The notes below the pieces were generated by a model. The model did no database searches. It saw only the letters and a list, made by a program, of their open reading frames with translations, and was not told the DNA's origin. The position numbers and the translations under genes were made by a program. A stretch of 62,865 bases of DNA, filler included, from Choristocarpus tenellus KU-1152 (taxonomy: Eukaryota; Protista; Phaeophyceae): the NCBI GenBank assembly GCA_964200185.2. It is 10 parts of 10 records of this genome, joined end to end, with 100 filler letters (N's around TTAATTAATTAA, not from the genome) between each part and the next. Parts side by side here need not be neighbours in the genome. Positions count along the whole stretch, not along the records: positions 1 to 11,379 come from CAXNAD020002357.1; 9 more parts are not named here. The stretch is one strand, 5' to 3'. Shown in pieces: positions 1 to 11,379 of this stretch (position 1 is the stretch's first letter; every line of letters begins with the position of its first letter).

Positions 1-52
1 AAGAGAGGAATGGGCGTTAATTGACGGGGGTAAAAGAGGATTGAGGTCGAGG

Positions 53-220
53 GGGTGGGGGGGGTGGGTGACGCTTCACCAAAGTTTCCATTTGGACCAC
101 ACCAGGAAAAATGCACTTTCATTATCCGTCCAACGTATGGAACCAAATCACCCTAAAATGGCGACAGGAAAAATTTAGCTCCAAATGGACAGCCACCACC
201 CCCCTCAAGTACTTTGAGCC
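53..220. mobile_element. MITE family A copy (degenerate)
   Basis: Similar to 54626-54802; ends CCCCCTCAAGTACTTTGAGCC. Confidence 0.8.
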
Positions 221-1506
221 TAACGCTGGATGGACTCTTCCTACATTGTGTGCTCCCCTGACTGCTGGTCGGAAATTTAGCTGCTTCAGCTGTCCTGGGA
301 GACATGACACCAGAGGAGGGAGGGTAGAGAGCAGAATGTGCAACCTTTTCAGACTGCTCTATTTCAACGATATATATAGAGAGTGGAAATATATATGCAA
401 AACTGTAGCAAGCCTTTCATTTGCCAAGGGAACTTTCCCAAATTGTATTCTATCAGACGCAGTTGAAGAACTATCCCGACTCGGGGACGCAAGAGCACAT
501 AATGACTGAAATATAGACTTAGGATCTATACAACACTCAAACTTCAGGTAGACCTAAGTCTTCTATGTGAGAGGCGCCAGGATAGCATTGCACGAAAAAG
601 AACAAATACACAAATAGAGCAGTTTACGTTTCACATTGAGTCAATAGTATACCTCCACGCTGTAATATGCTGCTCCTCCCTACAATCTCAATCACGATAT
701 TTTCAATCATGGTACTACTTGAGTGTGCGATTCCCATTTGGCACGCAAGATCCATCATTCATATATGAAACAGGAATGGTCTCCACATCTGCACCCCTCA
801 ACAAGGTGTTGCAAGAGCCACAAAGCATGATACCTCGAGGGGTACTAGCACTTCCAGCGTGGGTTCAGACTGCAAACAATTTATCGTCTGACCCCAAGGA
901 TACCTACGTATTGGTGTTCACACCAGGAATCCAGCCAGTGGTACAGGGGAAGCTGCACTGGACCAAGTCAGCAAGAGTTGCGAACGGTCCTACAGGGATA
1001 CCAGGATGGAAAGGATGAGCTTATCCCAAGTCCCCACTGACTCTAAGCATACCTTAAACTACATAGGATCAATGCGGTTACCCAAGAGGTGTTAAGAATG
1101 CCACTGAAAGACTAAGTGACTACTGTACAGTGCCCATAATCTTTACTCGATATTCTATTCTGTGATAAAAAGAGGCTTCATAGGCGAGATGGCTAACAAT
1201 GGACGCTGGATACATGGAGTGCTCAACTACCATACTCCTAGTACTCTACTACCATGTGATATTGTACGGTTGTAAATCATCATCCCCTCAATAATTCCAA
1301 TGATCTGGATGTATAACGTGGTTATCATCATGACATTGTTCTCAGGATGTTCATTCTAGGTCCACCACCACTCACTCTCACTCTCACTTCCCCTTGTAAG
1401 GTGGTTCAGAACTTATCCGTAATACCCAGATGTATATAAGCCTTCAGGTGCAAGACCACAAAACAGATGATACAAACACAACAAAACACTCTTCACGCAT
1501 TCTTAC

Positions 1507-4500
1507 CAATGTAGAAGCCATCAAGGAGGCTTGCCACGCGGAAATTCCCTCGGCCGTGAGCTTGCTCAAATGCAACTGTGGCATCGCTCCCCGCCTTGTC
1601 TAGAAGGATTTTGTACCCACCCGGATGCACAGTCAAGTACTTGGTGATGTCGTACACACCACCCCTAAACACTATCCAACAGGACTCAGCCGTGTGATGA
1701 GAGGCAATCTATGGAAGATATTATCGAGGCAGCAAAAAGAGCAATAGCAGGAGAGTGGTATCTGTGGGCTTAGCTATCTTTGTCACGTTTAAATTATTCC
1801 TTTGGTCACTTATTTTATTTTTGGCACACTCGACGGTTGACTTCAATTACCTGATCTGGGTATCAACTTCAAATTCAGAATGCACAAAAAGAAATGGCAT
1901 ACTACTGTAATATAAGAGGAAGGAGGAATTGACGAGAAATTATGTTGGGAAAACACCTCGACTTACATCAAGTATACTACTCTGGAGTGTATGTTACATA
2001 TAACTTTGCCGCCCTCAACCCGAGGCTCAACGAATCGGACATGGGATGATACAGCAGGACAGCAAATTTAATTTCTGTCCCACATACTCTCAAGTATGTA
2101 CAGCCTTTGGGAATGGGGATCGAGGGAACGGATGCTAAGAGCTTGAAGACAGTATCTGAGATAGAAATTAACTCGATAAAATAACACAATCTAGGATACC
2201 ACCAAAGAAATGGTATTTCCAAAAGAAAAAAAAGTTTCAAGTACTATTACAAAATTTGAAATTTACTGAGTATATACAGCATACAGATATATAGAGGACT
2301 AGCTGAACACTCAGCATTCTTTATGCCGATGTACAAAGAACTTCCAGCGATAATACCTCGGACCAATTGTATTCCATGTCTGTCACAGGTGGATGGCCAG
2401 AGTTGAACAGATCTATGCACAGGCGATCCTGGGCGATGAGCCTGGCAGCATAACGATCCCCTAGTTTCCTGAGGTTTTGTTGGAGAAAGTACCAGCTGAT
2501 ATTGTATAGTGGTTGGGCACACAGCTGGTATGCCTCACTGGTGATCTTGCGGGTGAATTCAGCCAAGATCGGCACACCACAAACATACCTGCCATACGAA
2601 GAAGGGAGGTTAGGGAGTTCACGTGAGTTGGAGCTCTAGCAAAAAAAATAATAATGTTCGGCCACGAATACAGGGCAAATGAAAGCATTTCCTGATCTTT
2701 CAAGCTAAGTGTGGCATCCTCCTTGTTTTTCCTCCCACGGGCAATTCAATCAATGAGGCGCATATAGGGTTGCCCCATATGGGGAGGTCTAAATGTCGGC
2801 GTGGAGACTGCCTATAGGGAAAAATTACGACTACCTTCATCTTTAACGCGAGGATGAGGTAAGATGCATCGACAAAGGACATTGTCGGGAAAAATATTTT
2901 GACTTCAAGGTCAGCTTTAAAGGAGCCAATCGAAACTCTTCTCCACGCCATGTTGTGCTCCAGTTAAATCAAAATACTCAAAGTGGTGCCTCTGCCTACC
3001 TACCTACGGAGGTGCTAGCTATTCTGTTCAAGTGACAACAGAGAGAGCCAAGAAAGTTATATCGTTTACAAGGGAAGTGCATTACGTTTCCGGAAAAGGG
3101 ATTTTGACATGCACTATATTTCGGGAATGAGATTTTGATACCAAAAGCAATTACAAAGGAATAAATCAAAAAATCTACACAATAGTATACTTTTCAGTAT
3201 TACATGTTGCGCTCGACATAATCTTAACATACGAAGTAGCCTAGCATGAAGCTACTCGACAAAGGAAGTCCTAGATCTACTTTTGACAGGACAATGTGGA
3301 AGAATTACGAAGACTGCCATGTACAAGGCACTACTTCCGCAATGATTTTAGTTTCATATTGGAATAGTCTATTATACAGCTGGGCATTGTCGGTCCTCTT
3401 GAGCGCTGGTACACATATGATTTCTTTTTTTTTCAAGGGTAGCCACTAAAAGCTCATCCAACGCACACCTGGGAAAAAACATTTAGCGATATAGGAAAGG
3501 ATATGCCAAACACTGAGGCTATTTCTGGCAGGGATTCTAGCATGTGCCCTCATCCAATTGTTCAATTGAACAGGACCAGGGGTGACCATTAAGAGAGAAG
3601 GATAATGGTCTATGAAAGAGATTGGCAACACAAAAATGGTTGTTCACTGGTTACTCGTGACAAGAATTTTCACGTAAAAGGGAGTATGTTCCCCCTCGTC
3701 AAAGCAGAATTGGTTCCAATAGATACTGACACTATCCCCCCCCCTTTTCTCCTCCCTCTCTCATCTTCACTGCTTCTTGAGATACACAGGTCACCCCCTT
3801 GACTTTATTTTGTCCCCCTTGACTTATTGGTAGCTAGCCTGGAGAATGCACAATCCACAGAGTCACGCACATTTCTCTAAGACAATACATCTTAACAGGT
3901 AATCACTATTCGTCGTTCCTTAGGAAACAATTGTACAGAATACGATTTGAATTACAATAATAGAGGGAAATGCGCAAGGAGGGGCTTGTTAGATTCTTGG
4001 GGTGCTTCCCTACCTCCTCACCCTGGGGTGCAACATAGATAGTAGGAAAAAAGGAAAAATATAACATTTTTCACATATGTGACAACTGTTACTTCTTTTG
4101 GGATTTTTAAGACATGTAAATAGTTTCATTAGTTTTCCCCCTAACAAATCTGCAAAACGTCAGAGGGCATAATAATAAAAATTACAGTAATATGTAATCG
4201 AAAGCATTGACAACGATCATATTTCATATCTTAGTGGGATAGAGAATCAATTCTGGGCTTTGATGTCCACATACTCCAGATGTTTTCTATATATTGGAGT
4301 TTTTATTAGAAAAGTTGTAAGTGTTCAAAGTTAGTGATTCCTTCTTGAAACGACAGGTGCTAAACCACCCCCCACCAACTATAATAGTATCACTTTTCTC
4401 TTTTCAACCATGATCACATTCAGTCACGGGGAATCGTGTGAGGCTCCCATCTCTTCTCTCTTCTTCCAATACTGACACACACAGCAGTCTAAAAATCTGC

Positions 4501-7500
4501 ACAACAATACCCTACACAGAATGCCATTCGTTCGTCCTTTCTCTAGGAACAAGGTTCTCCATCATCATGCTATTAGAATAAGGGTCCATTGGTTTTGTTG
4601 TGACTCACATGTGCCCTCCCATATCGAGCAAGTTCCACAGTCCACGAAGGTTCTCCTGACCTACCTTGGTGTTGCGGTCAAATAGGTTGTTGATACGTTT
4701 GCGCTCACCAGTCACGAATCGTATTTTCCACTCGCCATTCCCACATCCCTCCTCCCGAGCACATTCCCCGGCTGTGCCTTCTACGACCTTCATCTCCGTC
4801 CCAGATCTAGCACCCTCGTCCATAACTAAGTCTACATCCTCTCTGGAGAACGCTACCTTCAGCGTTACAAGCCCACTCCTAACATGCGGCATCCATGCGT
4901 CTTGAAAATAGAGCTTTTCCCGGCTCTGGACTCCCCACACCAGCCACACCTGGATATTAAGTGACAACCACGACAGATACAGATACAGTTTTGACCAGTA
5001 GTCGGCACACAAGCGTGTGCAACGATATTAAAACGTGGACTGTTTGGGTGGACAATTAGAACTTCATCAAACAGGAAAGTTGGTGGCAGCACTTCGTGAA
5101 AGTTTCTTAACAACAACGACTTTGGATAAATAACAAGAGAGAACACACACAAATCAGCAACAAAACATACAACCAAGGTTCTTACCTCTGTGAGCAACAT
5201 AGGAATCGTAAAAGGGGTGTGGAGTGGGAGTGGGGACCTGAAGAGTGGGACTCAATGTAGAAAAGACCACATACTTGCTCATGTGATTGCCAAGGTCGCA
5301 CAACCTATTCCCTCCCTTTGAAAAATGTTGAAAAATTGAAGATGAGAAGCCAACATCGTGACCAATATTTTAGTTGGCATGACTGCTTCAGCTCACCTCT
5401 CTCCGTATGTTCAACTTCTCTGATTGTGCTGCGATCTCCTGCAGGAATCCCATGAATGGTGCTACCCCAGTCCCTATGGATACCATCACAACTGGGACAG
5501 TTGGGTCCTCTGGCAAACGGAAATTTGGGGCTGGGGAGATGGCCGTGGGTAAACGCAGACCAGGAGCAGCACGGTCCAACAAAAGGTGTGATGCCGTCCC
5601 TGTTAGGTCTCCAGTCCCCTTTGGTGCCCCCAAGGCTTTCCACGTCCGATGACGAGGTCCAATCACCCCCTTCATAGCCTGGATCACTCTAGTCAGCTCC
5701 ACCAGCCACATTCTGACCCTGACGAATCTTCCCCCTCTCAAAGGCTTGTGCAGAAGAGCACAACACTTCTCAAGGATGGCTTTTTCAGAGTCGGTCCAAG
5801 TATGCTCAGTAGACAACCCCTTAACGGTGGAGTTGAGATATAAGGATGGATCCACAGTTTGCATTTTGGCTCCCTTAATTTTAACAACCGCAGATACAGC
5901 ACGCTTGACATGTTGTGCCACTGTAGGGTGATCTGTGGTGATGTTGTCAATGAATACCAACAGTGAAGAACGTTTCTGTGTTTTCGGAATTTCATCTGAT
6001 CGGAAAGGAGTGAAAGGTGCCGAAGTTGGTTTACATTCCTCCTCGCTTGTGGCACGGAGGATTTCGCCCGCTGTCCCTTGAAAAGGACCACCTTCTAATG
6101 GACGACATGCTGTAGATATACCCAAGGAGGCCTTAACACTATTCACCTCCTTGACCCCCCCACTGTTGCTGGTGGGTCCATTGGGCCTGCCACTCCTGTC
6201 CGCATATCTTGAGCAATCAAAGATCCAGGCTGGTCCAGTGATCCCATACCTTACCCGCCCCACCTGCTCAGACCAAAACCAACATCGAAACGTTGTTGAG
6301 ACAAAAACAACAAGCCAAACGTTGGTTGAGGTAGCTGTAAGGCAAGGGGGCAGGTAGCATTTTCCTATTAGCCACAGTCCACGTCACACAAACATGAACA
6401 GTCCACCATGCTCTCGGATCATAAAAACAGTACCAAGGAGGCACGAAGGAGACTACTGTGCCTGCATTGTTCTAGGGCCGTACTAGAGCGTGCATGATAC
6501 CTCTGATTTATCTAAGCCAGTGACGGGAAGGCAGCATTGCACTCACAACAATCGAAAGCTCCTCAGGGGCAGTTGAAGGATTAGGTGCAGAGGCAATGGA
6601 GTACTCTCTTCGGCGTAGCGGGGGCAGGATGAATGCAAGCTGCTGCAGTAGTGTATGCCCTGGTGAGACATATGAGGTTGCAGAGACGAATGACACAAAA
6701 GTGGCAAAATCCGTCTGGCATAGAAGGAGAAGGGAAGGCTTAGTGCGGTGAAATCAACAGTTGGCTTGTGCAGCAATCTTGCAAGCAATGAACTCATGTT
6801 CAACAGCAAGAGACAACGCCTTCCCAACTCTCGAGACAAGCACGATATACCCAGTCCAATTCTAAGTTGACTATCAATTATTTGAAGCAATACTGTCAAA
6901 CTTTAAATGAAACTAGCAACGTGGACGTATTCCTCATAACTGCTGCTGCTAGTACTACTGTAATGATATTGTGGGTTTGATATCCAAATTTAGTCTCATC
7001 ACATGTAACTCGCAGAGATGTACCTATACAGTGAATCGCATGAAGCACCTGCCAAAGACGATGATAGTTCCGAGTGACGAAGGAGCTTGTGCAGTACATG
7101 GCCTTCATTGTGCCCTCTGCAATATCACGTGTCATAGGATGTAGGGTCGCATGTTTTAGGAACTCATACAGTGGGAGGAATTCCTTGCCACCACTTATTT
7201 TGACGGAAACAACTTGTCTATCCCTGCACTCCTGTTTCCACTCATTAGTCAGGGGTATCAGGATTGCTCCATCCTGGTCCACGCATTGCAGTGCAAGAGC
7301 GTGGGTGGCGAAGAAGATTAGTTTTAGGGCCGTGTCTAGGGGGGTTGATCGAAGATTCAATAGCAGGGCTGAGTGAAAGTATCTTAGAGGGTACGATTTC
7401 TGCCCTGTTAGTACATTTGGGGCTTGGCTTCTCGCAGGTTTTAATGACATTTCACCTACTCCAAAATGTTTCAGAGTAGGTAAAAATGTATATGTTATGA

Positions 7501-10379
7501 AAAGGAGTGTCCAGAACAAGGACATTGACATCTCCTAATAAACATGATAGCCAAAATAACATCAAAATTGCAACAATGGATTTTGGCCCCCAAATGGACG
7601 CGGCTCTACCCTCTAAGATACTTTGACTCGGCTGTAGGAGATGTTGTGTTGAACAGTAGAGGAGAAAGTGCAATAGCAAGTATGTATGAATAGATCATAC
7701 AAATTGTGCTTGTGGTTTATGGTTTGATAGTTCATAATGAATCTGGGGGGATCTGGGAGAACAGGTTGGGGGGGACTCAGAGAGTCTGAGAGATCAAATG
7801 AAAGGTTGAACCATAATAGGTCCCCTTCACATATTTGTCCCCTCACCTCGCCAACGGCGTCCAGTGTCTCATCCACTAGGTTTTCACTGTTGGACGGCAG
7901 CACAGATAGACGATCTCCAGGATGAAACAAGAGTCCTGTCCCCCTCATGTTGAAGGTCACAACCTTGGCATCTGTTCCGGGCAATGCTGCCACCCGTTTC
8001 ACCTAAGGGGTAGGGCACAGATAGACACCGTACAGCCTATGTACACTTCGTGCTGTTCGGTATGTACATTGATTATAAAGTTATCTTTTTTCTTGTCATT
8101 CCTTTTTCATACCAATATGTGCCTAGGCGCAACTGCTCCAACTCCGACAACAAACGCAGTGGGGAAAGAGCGAATGCCACCCCAAAGGCACTGCTATCTT
8201 TGAGAAAACTCTGATGGTACTGGAGAGCGATGGAGCCACTGAAATGTAAGAACTTGGAAAATACTTTGAATTATACATCAAAAGTAATTACTGTATCTAT
8301 AGAAAATCTTTGTGGCACAGATGTAGAAAGTACTCAAGACAAAAAGAAGTGTTCACATGTGAGTTCCAACAGGGCTCAGAATATCTGTCCAAAATGAAAA
8401 CAAAACCAACACAAACCCACGTTTTATACCTTCTTTCCACCTGATTAGCTCTCAACGTTTCAAACACAGAAAGGGTGTCCTCACTTTTAATTGGACCCAA
8501 CCTATCACTGGTTGAAATTAACGGAGGGATTAAGGATGATCATCCCATAAAATAAATAATAATAATAATAATAATAATAATATACAAAATCGTATCAGCA
8601 AAAAATAGTACTAATAATAACAATATTACAAATATTAATAGTAATAATATATCAATACAACTAATAATAGTAGTAGTACGAATGATTGTAATAAAAGTAA
8701 TTCTAGTAGGAATAGCAATAGCAACAGCAATAGCAGTAACAATAGTAGGAATAGGAATAGCAATAGCAATAACAATAGCAATAACAAATAGTAACAGTAA
8801 TAGTAAAAATAATAGCAATATCAATAATAATAGTAAAAATAATAGTAATAGTGATACTATATATTCGAGACAGAGCTGAAATTATAGTGAGCCTGCACAG
8901 ATCACACTCACAGTCTAAGTCTGTCATAGCTTTGTGTTCCACTCCTTACCTGATGAGAAATCATAACCAACAGTCAAAATTTGTTACCTCACAGTATCAT
9001 ACTAATGGGGTACATGCTTCAAGTGGAATTCTGATCAATGATTTTGGTGGGGTCATCAATATCACGTGCTTGTCAAGATTCTGATCTTGGACTCGAAATA
9101 TCTGTTCAACGTTGTGCAAGAAAATCTAGAAGGTTGCACATATTTTAACACAAATCATAGGAAACAAAATCAGTACATTTATCTACCTTCACACATATTC
9201 ATGCACCAAGCAGCCTGCTAACCAGCTTGGGGTAAATGTGGGAACTCGAGTGCTTGCTTCCAAGTATGTGCTCAATATGTTGCCTGCATAAGAGAACCTG
9301 GTCTTATACACTCTTCCGTCACCCACCTTCCTGCAGGACTTGGGGTAATAGCTTATGGATGAAAGCAAAGAAATGTGAACTACTCCTATCAATCACACCT
9401 GCACACTTGTATATGTGCGGGACCCAACCACCATCCGCTGGCGCTCAGTCATCGCATCAAGCATGAACCGGTTAACCGTGAGCCATGGCCGGGACTGCCA
9501 TCCAACATCAAGCTTTGTACCAGCAGCTGTTTTTGTCCGTCCAGTCTTGGTTGCTACCTCGATAAATCCAAATATTTTTAGGCGATGAACCTTGGGTTTG
9601 AGTTGGGAGAAGAACATATCGTGGGCGGAAGGAGAGAGGAGGTGTTGGGTGAGTTGGACTGCACATCACTTGCGTGTGATGTTGGATGGAGATTGCTCGA
9701 ACAAAGGCTCTATAAATTGAATTTCAATTGACCCCTGGATGAAATACAAATAGGTGAGTCAAAGTATCTTAGAGGGTAGAGCCGCGTCCATTTGGGGGCC
9801 AAAATCCAATGTTGCAATTTTGATGTTATTTGGCTATCATGTTTGTTAGTAGATGTCAATATCCTTGTTCTGGAACCTTTTCATAACGTATACATTTTAC
9901 CTACTCTGAAACATTTTGGAGTAGGTAAAATGTCATTATAAACCTGTGAGAAGCCAAGCCCCAAATGTACAAACAGGGCAAAAATCGTACCCTCTAAGAT
10001 ACTTTCACTCCGGTTTTATGTTGACATTGGGCAGGATTAAAAGATACGGTTTTATGGCACTCTTCGCATTACATCATCGTACACTACAGGATAATGCAGC
10101 AGGGTGTGAAGACACAAAAGAGACTCAGCTCTGACATCAGCGACAAGGCAGTGAAATATCATGTGGTCGGACATCGACCGTGAAGCAGGAACTCCACATT
10201 GTGGAACATGCATTTTTTTCTTAAACTTGCTCACCTCCAGGAATCCAAATGAGCCCTCCTTGCCCACGAACAGGCTATGCACCTCCCTGAACATGTTGCG
10301 GAACTCCTGGCCATCTGTGAGCTCAATATATGACAGCAGGGAGACTGCTCGCACTGCCTTGAAAAAATCTCGATGGAGC
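1507..10379 (-). CDS. Multi-exon fusion protein: IDO/PrnB-like haem dioxygenase + CPR/NOS-like FAD- and NADPH-binding reductase + cytochrome b5 (5' and 3' ends not fixed)
   Basis: Exons 10379-10235, 9590-9399, 8002-7847, 7273-7049, 6714-6547, 6263-5397, 4949-4609, 2588-2357 and 1708-1507 all have AG/GT boundaries and join in phase (2528 nt, about 842 aa). IDO-like C-terminal helices with the proximal His: LHRDFF...GFLE|[13 protein letters not shown]...TAAG. FAD binding: [31 protein letters not shown] binding: [39 protein letters not shown]|YVCG, RLCIDLF. Cytochrome b5: [23 protein letters not shown]...[11 protein letters not shown]. Further 5' exons are likely within 10577-11100 or lost at the gap; the last exon may start at 991. 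Confidence 0.88.
7371..7629. mobile_element. MITE family B, complete, intronic
   Basis: TIR GAGTGAAAGTATCTTAGAGGGTA...TACCCTCTAAGATACTTTGACTC, flanked by the 4-bp direct repeat GGCT. Confidence 0.92.
8550..8855. repeat. Low-complexity AAT/AGT/AGC trinucleotide mosaic (intronic)
   Basis: Degenerate runs of aat, aatagc and aatagt. Confidence 0.85.
9756..10010. mobile_element. MITE family B, complete, intronic, inverted relative to 7371-7629
   Basis: Same TIRs; flanks are AGGT/CGGT (4-bp TSD with one mismatch). Confidence 0.92.
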
Positions 10380-11168
10380 CTGCCAAACAGATAAGAAAGC
10401 CCTCCGTAGTCAGTACTACATATTACGTAGTACGTACATACTGTGTAAATAGCGAATACTTATCGAATTAAGGATGTCACACTCCGAGTCAAACCTGCAA
10501 GGGTTATACACCTCTTGGTCAGGGTGCAGGTGAAAGATGAGTTAGAGGAAACACAACTTTGATGAAATTGATTTACCTACTGGGATAGTCTGTTATCAGC
10601 TGAGCACTATCAACAGATTGTTGCGCCATAGTGTATCATGAACCACACTACCACGCATATGTACTGATCTCAGATGGAAGAGGCAAACAACAAAGGGAAC
10701 CATCTCATTTTGAACTTAAGCTGAGTACTCAGGAGCAATCTTTTAACACCAGCAGTCATTGATTCAAAACCCATCATCACGTCTACATCGGACACTATTT
10801 GACCCTCGTGTCCAAATTTATAGGTGTACAATGTCCAAATAGATAGGATGAGATTATTTTCAGTCATTTTCTCTAGAGCCTATCACTGATATCTGTTTTC
10901 ATGAATCCATTTAAGCCCGTACCTCAACACTACTTGTGCGCAGCACACGCTTGTCCGGAATGTTTTCTTGCTCGATATTTGAATTGAAGAATGGGGTCAA
11001 ATACGGTAGAAACCTATAGGCACCATACACCAGTATAAGTCGTCCGAGTACACAAAAATCTGGCTTTACACACCTGCCATAATTGTGGGCACACCTCGAG
11101 GCAACAATGGACTGTACAGAACACACATATATATAGACAACACATGCAATAAGTACCCTCCCAACACC

Positions 11169-11335
11169 GACCCAAAGTATCTGGGGGGGGTGGCGGCTGT
11201 CCATTTGGGGTCAATTTTTTCATATCGTGATTTTGGGTAATTTGGTTGCACATGACGGATGGATAGCGAAAGTGCACTTTTCCTGGTTTTGGTTCAAAAA
11301 ATGGACACCCTGGTGTAGACCCCCCCCCTCCCCAC
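11169..11335. mobile_element. MITE family A copy
   Basis: GACCCAAAGTATCTGGGGGG...AATGGACACCCTGGTGTAGACCCC; lies next to a gap. Confidence 0.85.
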
Positions 11336-11379
11336 ATATTTCGGGTCACACCTAAATACATTATCAAGAAACGGAATCG

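Follow-up and report, generated by a model that had tools for sequence, protein, structure and literature searches.

The genome of the brown alga Choristocarpus tenellus KU-1152 contains a locus that raises the question of whether an IDO-type haem oxygenase can be encoded in one polypeptide together with its own electron supply. The locus lies in a stretch of 62,865 nucleotides (the window; ten parts of the GenBank assembly GCA_964200185.2 joined end to end, filler included), of which positions 1-11379 are contig C2357 in full (11.4 kb). The initial annotation, made from the sequence alone, had assigned nine exons on this contig to a protein with a haem dioxygenase domain, an FAD/NADPH reductase and a cytochrome b5 (b5) domain. 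We find that this architecture is secure, in a gene that is truncated at both ends of the contig. In our reading, to which we give a probability of about 0.6, the gene encodes a self-reducing IDO-type haem oxygenase composed of an IDO domain, an FAD/NADPH module, b5 and a tail, in which electrons would pass from NADPH through FAD and b5 to the haem. This electron path is plausible and is supported by in-silico predictions.

Exon structure and selection

The nine exons, here called D to L, are located on the minus strand between positions 10379 and 1507 and were found exactly as annotated (Table 1). All of them are bordered by an AG acceptor and a GT donor, their phases are consistent, and not a single in-frame stop occurs in the 2528 nt that they comprise. 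The motifs that had been quoted for them are likewise all present, namely LHRDFF in exon D, REYSIAS in exon H, GTGVAPF in exon I, AFSRED in exon J, YVCG and CIDLF in exon K, and HPGG and AHG in exon L. The exon model and these motifs are real, far beyond what chance would produce.

The exons were searched singly, and the deposited partial protein (P0001, see below) and database homologues stood in for the full product. The order of exons D to L was recovered by tblastn searches with full-length homologues. These searches gave E-values of 6e-10 to 9e-9 for exon E (with the homologues P0002, P0004 and P0005), 3e-8 for exon G (with residues 466-530 of P0005), 5e-10 to 2e-11 for exon I, 8e-13 for exon J (with P0004), 7e-9 for exon K and 8e-24 for exon L. 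In Pfam, exons F and H matched FAD_binding_1 with E-values of 4.8e-5 (profile positions 31-67) and 3.8e-4 (profile positions 169-203), respectively, exon I gave a weak match to NAD_binding_1 (E=0.08), and exon L matched Cyt-b5 (PF00173) with 49.9 bits (E=3.3e-13; cut-off 23.7). Exons D and E by themselves have no Pfam match. Agreement with the family consensus was observed for exon D (R.W.P...R.F..AV), exon G (the block ..flr.a.l.Pl), exon H (the R.YSi.S block), exon I (G.sSsfL...FrlP...GtG.aPF), exon J (WLi.g.r...afSred...gah) and exon K (y.CG...Rlh.d.f.sg). When exons H, J and K and exon A of a paralogue were each compared with solved structures, no usable match was obtained.

A paralogue of the gene on contig C2358 is collinear with it, all nine exons are open, and the alignment is gapless except in an insert within exon I. 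Eight of the exons are 86-93% identical between the two copies and exon I is 75% identical, whereas in the stretches that lie between exons blastn matches are weaker (~68-78%) or absent. Exon D, with 88% identity, has a proportion of non-synonymous differences (pN) of 0.06 against a proportion of synonymous differences (pS) of 0.33, and the most constrained exon is K, with a pN of 0.019 against a pS of 0.27 (pN/pS ~0.07). The insert in exon I (~200 residues; window positions 5600-6200) lies between two motifs of the FAD domain, contains many Ser, Thr, Pro and charged residues, and evolves fast. It differs from that of the paralogue by several indels and shows a pN of 0.16, but its frame is still open. 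Inserts at this site are present in other members of the eukaryote-type clade described below and are short or absent in bacteria. The overall dN/dS between the two copies is 0.25, which indicates that the gene is under purifying selection.

Regarded as a unit, the nine exons are genuine but incomplete, as exon D starts and exon L ends in the middle of a codon, in a gene cut by the contig ends. Three upstream exons, A to C, were found on contig C16849 (3972 bp), which overlaps the end of the window by 75 bp at 97% identity. The first base of exon D is the third base of a codon that is completed by the last two bases of exon C, and the joint of the two exons, ...DLKWLPK/LHRDFF, resembles ...MPPAHRNFL of IDO1. 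Since exon D starts in the middle of a codon and exons A to C are on C16849, the window contains just the last ~113 of the ~420 residues of the IDO-like domain, its invariant His included. At the other end, exon L is followed by a GTAAGA donor after the first base of a codon, and therefore at least one further 3' exon must be located off the contig. Homologues have 180-250 additional residues after b5. For this tail, tblastn gave no significant match in window positions 1-1600 or in C2358, and a genome search with the tail of P0002 gave no match either. A tail exon (W..L...MLEHRSVF.LNL) was found later via a third copy of the gene, at positions 7824-8030 of contig C1175 and 2 kb downstream of the b5 exon of that copy. 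It is also present on contigs C12298 and C16146, and the end of C16146 matches window positions 58-106, in repeat sequence and with 94% identity. The full product would comprise ~1350 amino acids (aa), with an IDO-family haem domain, an FAD/NADPH module, b5 and a helical tail. Three or more contigs share the gene, and only pieces of it are annotated.

The haem domain

The Pfam model IDO (PF01231; cut-off 26) matched P0001 with 45.1 bits, exon A of the paralogue with 29.5 bits and homologues with 48-78 bits. A profile of 48 domains of the family matched human IDO1 with an E-value of 8e-38 over IDO1 residues ~18-341, at an identity to IDO1 of 17-20%. An AlphaFold (AF2) model of P0002 residues 31-470 had a mean confidence (pLDDT) of 87.7, and in a Foldseek comparison of this model with the PDB the best 50 matches listed were all IDO1, with 420-440 aligned columns and TM scores of 0.74-0.81. 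As modelled on this close homologue, the haem domain is predicted to have the two-lobed, all-helical IDO fold. The domain had been described as 'IDO/PrnB-like', and the IDO half of this description is borne out by both Pfam and the fold. For PrnB (PF08933), there was no match at E<=0.01 in the eight proteins tested, and the TDO models were likewise unmatched. As the best 50 fold matches listed were also all IDO1, the domain can be regarded as IDO-type and not PrnB-type. Of the domain set that had been expected from such searches, the IDO fold, FAD_binding_1, NAD_binding_1 and Cyt-b5 were thus recovered in the homologues, and PrnB was not. A single-sequence search with P0002 residues 1-470 matched IDO1 no further than its first ~100 residues and, in addition, gave matches to repeat proteins that were dismissed as spurious.

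One His residue, that of the motif G.HRLK.YGFLE, is invariant in all 48 family members and corresponds to the His encoded by exon E. In the model it opens the helix 354-372, which is followed by a loop of low confidence. We take the topology of IDO1 to be the same, with His346 opening a helix before the flexible JK loop. Since the hidden Markov model (HMM) alignment to IDO1 ends five residues short of His346, the exact equivalence of the two residues is something that we infer, and the invariant His is the presumed proximal haem ligand. A motif that resembles part of the JK loop, GR..T..G, is conserved to at least 90%, including a Thr near the place of Thr379 of IDO1. This conserved Thr and an F-x-V-S motif resemble Thr379 and Phe164/Ser167 of IDO1, respectively. 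Thr379 presumably takes part in substrate binding in IDO1, and the conservation of the Thr in GR..T..G suggests an amino-acid-like substrate.

Reductase, b5 and tail domains

The part of the protein that follows the haem domain was compared with known reductases by means of a profile of the reductase-b5 region, in which the window exons formed separate rows. The best match was the FAD/NADPH fragment of the E. coli sulfite reductase flavoprotein (SiR-FP), with an E-value of 3.8e-55. The next matches in the PDB, each covering the whole module, were P450 BM3 (E~1e-48), CPR (E~3e-47), NOS and methionine synthase reductase. The motifs of the window that align to the family consensus, RREYSIAS, GTASHLL, GTGxAPF (GTGVAPF in the window), AFSRED, YVCG and CIDLF (D-x-F), are ones that we take to be the equivalents of the CPR elements for binding of FAD and of the NADPH 2'-phosphate, and of the Ser/Cys/Asp triad (rat CPR).

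The distance between the end of the IDO-like domain (TERQR...) and FAD_binding_1 is ~12-35 residues, and ~35 residues in the homologues. Because only this short linker separates the two, an FMN domain is truly absent. Together with the lack of a flavodoxin match in seven full-length homologues, the short linker implies that the module represents the FAD/NADPH half only, and not a diflavin reductase. Both His ligands of b5, in HPGG and AHG, are conserved in the family. The tail is predicted with confidence to be a helical bundle (pLDDT 89) and forms a conserved fifth domain. No relatives of the tail were found with Pfam, or with Foldseek in the PDB at E<=0.001. The best Z score in VIA-align was 7.2, which is in the range of generic helical bundles, and matches in the ESM Atlas had TM scores below 0.5.

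Family members in bacteria and eukaryotes

A HMMER scan with exon A of the paralogue identified 276 proteins, most of which have lengths of 1000-1450 aa. In all seven full-length homologues tested (1100-1450 aa), the IDO domain is combined with FAD_binding_1, NAD_binding_1 and Cyt-b5, and a flavodoxin domain is lacking. The order that had been annotated for the alga, with an IDO-family haem domain followed by an FAD/NADPH module devoid of an FMN domain and then by b5, is also the architecture of complete proteins from other organisms. Uninterrupted full-length genes are present in the genomes of at least 73 bacterial species. These belong to the Chloroflexota, Actinomycetota (Nocardioides immobilis, Kitasatospora sp.), Cyanobacteriota (Chrysosporum bergii, Limnofasciculus), Sericytochromatia, Acidobacteriota, Pseudomonadota, Bdellovibrionota, Myxococcota and Bacteroidota. 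Eukaryotic members are represented by a transcript of Endostelium zonatum (Amoebozoa) and by a complete open reading frame (ORF) on one transcript of the red alga Eucheuma denticulatum. Relatives in bacteria and fungi had been mentioned in the initial annotation. The bacterial ones were indeed found, but none were seen in fungi.

In the source annotations, members of the family are named 'sulfite reductase flavoprotein' (metagenome proteins) or 'unnamed protein product'. NCBIfam has no model for the family, and few named relatives, if any, were retrieved by word-based protein searches. We found no paper on a fusion of IDO, reductase and b5 in the literature, most subscription journals being outside the coverage of this search. 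As far as could be found, the family is therefore uncharacterised, although its architecture resembles known kinds of proteins, namely IDO and self-sufficient fusions of haem domains with reductases.

In 45 of the 62 bacterial loci, the homologue directly adjoins a gene of the same orientation that encodes a CBS-pair protein of ~150-160 aa. This gene is usually found upstream and sometimes overlaps the homologue. In bacteria, its product has the appearance of a dedicated partner or regulator. The IDO-like domain is preceded by an additional domain in some long members of the bacterial clade, either FHA (P0035, P0070) or gamma-glutamyl cyclotransferase-like (GGACT/AIG2-like; P0119, P0131). In one bacterial member, P0051 (GCA_009885495.1, locus L018 6001-9345), the reductase motifs are degenerate. 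FVSYPVFR is found in place of RxYSxxS, AEDNGLNAF in place of GTGxAPF and HEGG in place of HPGG, and the reductase of this protein may be inactive.

The maximum-likelihood tree of 71 haem domains consists of two clades, separated with an SH-aLRT support of 100. All known eukaryotes (Choristocarpus, Endostelium and Eucheuma) are found together with unlabelled relatives in a clade of 18 rows, and every known bacterial member is in the other clade, of 53 rows. Most of the 150 hits listed, and the shorter fragments, are not among its rows. As the tree was rooted at the midpoint only, it does not indicate in which direction any ancient transfer took place. It had been suggested that the algal gene could be a horizontal acquisition that subsequently gained introns. 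As the alga belongs to the eukaryote-type clade, well separated from the known bacterial members, a recent acquisition from bacteria followed by intron gain is not supported by this tree.

Proposed electron chain and alternative explanations

In the working that we propose, NADPH would reduce the FAD in a module of the CPR/sulfite reductase type, and the FAD would in turn reduce the haem of b5, which would stand in for FMN. The b5 domain would then dock by its haem edge on the helix that follows the invariant, presumed proximal His, by which the catalytic haem would be kept in, or returned to, the ferrous, O2-binding state. In the reaction itself, tryptophan or a related aromatic compound resembling an amino acid may be oxidised in an O2-dependent manner. 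We infer both the order of electron transfer and the role of b5 in place of FMN. A contact between b5 and the haem domain, which had already been postulated in the initial annotation, was assessed by complex prediction with the haem and b5 domains of P0002, two haems being included. The score was 0.61 against 0.04 for the best control, and passed a mark that 51 of 78 solved complexes and 2 of 108 mismatched pairs also attained. At least 76% of the contacts were common to the runs, and the pLDDT of the partner was 84 or higher. In the predicted complex, b5 contacts residues 390-401 of P0002 through its HPGG and AHG loops, which form its haem edge. These residues make up the helix just after His388 and have their counterpart in exon E. 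The chain from NADPH through FAD and b5 to the haem is plausible because the prediction sets the haem edge of b5 beside the His-bearing helix, a result that supports such docking as a putative mode of contact. We also count as support that the domain set has been kept from bacteria to algae. The activity of IDO1 can be supported in vitro by CPR with or without b5, and the in vivo relevance of this is still unclear (PMC13142367).

Several observations weigh against this reading. In the homologues, the match to the Pfam IDO model does not extend beyond the first half of the domain (profile positions 8-209), and in the profile alignment no conserved Arg is found opposite Arg231, the residue that binds the substrate carboxylate in IDO1. 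P0002, on which both the fold and the complex were predicted, is ~50% identical to the algal protein in exon A, and it should be noted that no ligands were included in the calibration of the complex test, in which a pass does not prove binding. The assignment of exons A to C to the gene depends on the 75-bp overlap with C16849 in repeat-rich sequence, and the proposed splicing and expression rest on homology and selection. Lastly, the dioxygenation of tryptophan consumes no net electrons, which are needed only to rescue oxidised haem, and a reaction that consumes electrons would account at least equally well for a reductase that is permanently fused.

Two such reactions can be envisaged. The protein could be a nitric oxide (NO) dioxygenase of the flavohaemoglobin kind, in which Fe(II)-O2 and NO would yield nitrate and Fe(III) and the fused reductase would re-reduce the haem. 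An attached NADPH reductase is the hallmark of flavohaemoglobins, which use one electron per turnover against none for tryptophan dioxygenation (PMC3820574), and the lack of a conserved counterpart of the tryptophan-binding Arg231 would fit such a function. So would the molluscan IDO-like myoglobins, in which, as cited in PMC1821046, the IDO fold serves as a plain O2 binder. We nevertheless consider this explanation unlikely, in view of the GR..T..G motif and its Thr, kept to at least 90% as if for an amino-acid-like substrate, of bacterial neighbourhoods that show the CBS-pair gene and no NO-response genes, and of a sequence in which no feature specific for NO was found. The other candidate, a haem mono-oxygenase with built-in reductant and thus an IDO-fold analogue of P450 BM3, appears to us slightly less likely still. 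The supply of two electrons per turnover would justify the fusion, and the reductase is closest to those of BM3, CPR and SiR-FP. Moreover, the IDO/TDO superfamily reportedly includes reductant-dependent mono-oxygenases, as MarE and SfmD are said to mono-oxygenate or hydroxylate aromatic amino acids with the help of an external reductant, and the N-terminal GGACT and FHA domains of some bacterial members hint at specialised metabolism or regulation. However, b5 carries single electrons at a fairly high potential, which is typical of haem re-reduction rather than of O2 activation by a His-ligated haem. In addition, the nearest relatives in both sequence and fold are true IDOs, and no biosynthetic gene cluster surrounds the two bacterial genes inspected.

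Two further explanations are in our view very improbable. A role as a sensor of redox state, O2 or NO, or as another haem-based signalling protein in which the tail transmits the ligand or redox state of the haem, would be in line with the conservation of the helical tail after b5, with the CBS-pair gene at 45 of 62 bacterial loci, with the FHA domains of some members and with LuxR-type regulators nearby in one context, on two metagenome contigs. Yet the protein lacks any fused kinase, cyclase, DNA-binding or other known output domain, and intact NADPH/FAD machinery under strong constraint argues for turnover. Alternatively, the modules in the alga could belong to separate genes, or to an unexpressed or decaying duplicate that merely resembles a fusion. 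The public runs that contain the locus are DNA only, the assembly is fragmented with the gene over at least three contigs, and the third copy is divided between contigs C401 and C1175 and may be rearranged. This is countered by the reading frame itself, as the phases link the modules (GGH-M/YVCG at the J/K joint, a codon split across contigs at the C/D joint, and phase 0 elsewhere) and neither a start codon nor a stop occurs between them. Likewise, a dN/dS of 0.25, and a ratio of 0.07 in exon K, reflects strong constraint, and the same order of modules is found in single ORFs or transcripts of bacteria, Eucheuma and Endostelium.

The preferred reading, that of a self-reducing IDO-type oxygenase, can be extended to the family as a whole, though only tentatively and at somewhat less than even odds. 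The family, which is widespread and occurs in many bacterial phyla as well as in red algae, brown algae and Amoebozoa, would then consist of self-sufficient IDO-type oxygenases with a b5 shuttle replacing FMN, a helical tail and, in bacteria, a CBS-pair partner. It would indicate that b5 together with a flavin reductase is the native and ancient means of haem reduction in IDOs.

Gene copies, contig ends and repeats

The assembly of C. tenellus consists of 27,310 contigs with a total length of 164 Mb, in which about three copies of the gene are present, their exons being 75-93% identical (Table 1). In the copy on C401, exons J to L are not found within 10 kb downstream of exon I, and C1175 contains exons J to L and the tail exon. 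These two contigs may represent a single locus in two parts, a copy that has been rearranged, or haplotypes.

Contig C16849 encodes the NCBI protein CAM9902478.1 (P0001), which was deposited as 'unnamed protein product, partial [Choristocarpus tenellus]'. In this model the A/B junction reads ...VQLKPA/YNFIVSC (C16849 2189-2484). The alignments of homologues extend to C16849 position 2228 and favour ...KPAVMACGGM/GEYNFIVSC, by which the G...E..F motif of the family is restored. The start of CAM9902478.1 is a later Met (MAFLSMDGG), and the first in-frame ATG is located at C16849 position 1668.

Two copies of a miniature inverted-repeat transposable element (MITE)-type sequence are inserted in introns in opposite orientations. 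They are 94% identical to each other, their ends are inverted repeats of ~23 bp (GAGTCAAAGTATCTTAGAGGGTA...), and at least dozens of further copies with 82-93% identity are present on other contigs. The word depth of this element in the DNA runs is ~10^5. When the two public DNA assembly runs that contain the locus, the only ones that do, were aligned to positions 4500-10400, no splice joints were obtained. Apparent read 'joints' at ~7625-9755 proved to be artefacts of the two transposable element copies.

A repeat with long G/C runs occurs at both ends of C2357 (58-343 and 11171-11350), at positions 404-583 of C1175 and at the end of C16146. The gene was broken into separate contigs probably because of this repeat. 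In the E-F intron, a stretch with 27% G+C contains the microsatellites (AAT)9 at 8555-8582 and an imperfect (TAGCAA)24 at 8704-8851, which give rise to long but meaningless open frames (for example poly-Leu and poly-Ile).

Table 1. Exons, gene copies and transposable elements. Positions are those of the window unless a contig is named.
Feature	Location	Strand	Content	Borders and phase
Exon A	C16849:1668-2228		Upstream exon of the gene	
Exon B	C16849:2478-2706		Upstream exon of the gene	
Exon C	C16849:3581-3746		Upstream exon of the gene	Codon shared with exon D
Exon D (4th of the gene)	10235-10379	-	IDO-like segment (K)LHRDFFKAV...GSFGFLE	AG at 10381-10380, GT at 10234-10233
Exon E	9399-9590	-	End of IDO-like domain: invariant His, GR..T..G loop, closing helix to TERQR	AG/GT, phase 0
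Exon F	7847-8002	-	Start of FAD-binding module (VKRVAALPG...); directly after IDO-like domain, no FMN/flavodoxin exon between	AG/GT, phase 0
Exon G	7049-7273	-	Connecting/FAD subdomain	AG/GT, phase 0
Exon H	6547-6714	-	FAD-binding motif R-x-Y-S-x-x-S	Donor GTGAGT
Exon I (289 aa)	5397-6263	-	FAD strand VGRVRY, ~200-residue insert, GTASHLL (G-x-x-S), FRLPEDP, start of NADPH fold	Open frame, AG/GT, phase 0
Exon J	4609-4949	-	Middle of NADPH-binding domain (KVAFSRED, LLDMGGH)	Ends two bases into a codon; J/K codon AT/G reads GGHM-YVCG
Exon K	2357-2588	-	End of reductase (YVCG, RLCIDLF) and linker to b5	
Exon L	1507-1708	-	Cytochrome b5 domain with both haem ligands (HPGG, AHG)	GTAAGA donor at 1506-1505
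Gene copy 1	C16849 + window (+ C16146?)			
Gene copy 2	C2358 (+ C12298?)			
Gene copy 3	C401 (5' part) + C1175 (3' part)			
MITE-type element	9755-10010	+	~260 bp, D-E intron, non-coding; absent at the same place in the paralogue on C2358	
MITE-type element, second copy	7371-7629	-	F-G intron	

Comparison with known systems

How IDO is maintained in the ferrous state in cells is an old and unsettled question, and the conservation of a natural fusion with exactly these partners is independent evolutionary evidence for the route via CPR and b5. If our reading is correct, the gene represents a 'Rosetta stone' fusion, and it would provide an enzyme that requires no added reductant for studying or using IDO chemistry. 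It would also represent a new design of a self-sufficient haem enzyme, with b5 in place of FMN. The intronless orthologues of the cultured bacteria Nocardioides immobilis, Kitasatospora sp. MAP5-34 and Chrysosporum bergii are tractable proteins for such studies.

A close parallel is IDO1 itself, which has the same fold of the haem domain, with the invariant His presumably at the topological place of the proximal ligand, and the same kinds of redox partners, a CPR-type FAD/NADPH module and b5. In the family of the alga, these are fused in one chain. The pair of IDO1 and CPR differs from the family in that CPR has an FMN domain, which is absent here, and the family adds the helical tail and is devoid of a conserved Arg231. 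PrnB and TDO resemble the family as members of a superfamily of His-ligated haem enzymes that act on tryptophan derivatives, but PrnB has no fused reductase.

Among enzymes with a linked reductase, P450 BM3 (CYP102A1) is alike in having an N-terminal haem oxygenase domain followed by an FAD/NADPH module of the diflavin reductase type. Its haem is that of a Cys-ligated P450 and its shuttle is FMN, whereas in the family the haem domain has the IDO fold, whose haem is His-ligated in IDO1, and a b5 located C-terminal to the reductase replaces FMN. In flavohaemoglobin (Hmp), too, an O2-binding haem domain with a His ligand is joined to an FAD/NAD(P)H reductase by which the haem is re-reduced. However, flavohaemoglobin has a globin fold, electrons pass directly from FAD to haem without b5, and its short FNR-type reductase has no connecting subdomain. 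Lastly, in NCB5OR and assimilatory nitrate reductase, b5 is linked to an NAD(P)H flavin reductase in a one-electron relay to a terminal metal centre. The FAD domain of these two enzymes is of the b5-reductase type (FAD_binding_6), whereas the family matched FAD_binding_1 and not FAD_binding_6, and it also differs from them in the order of its domains and in the terminal acceptor.

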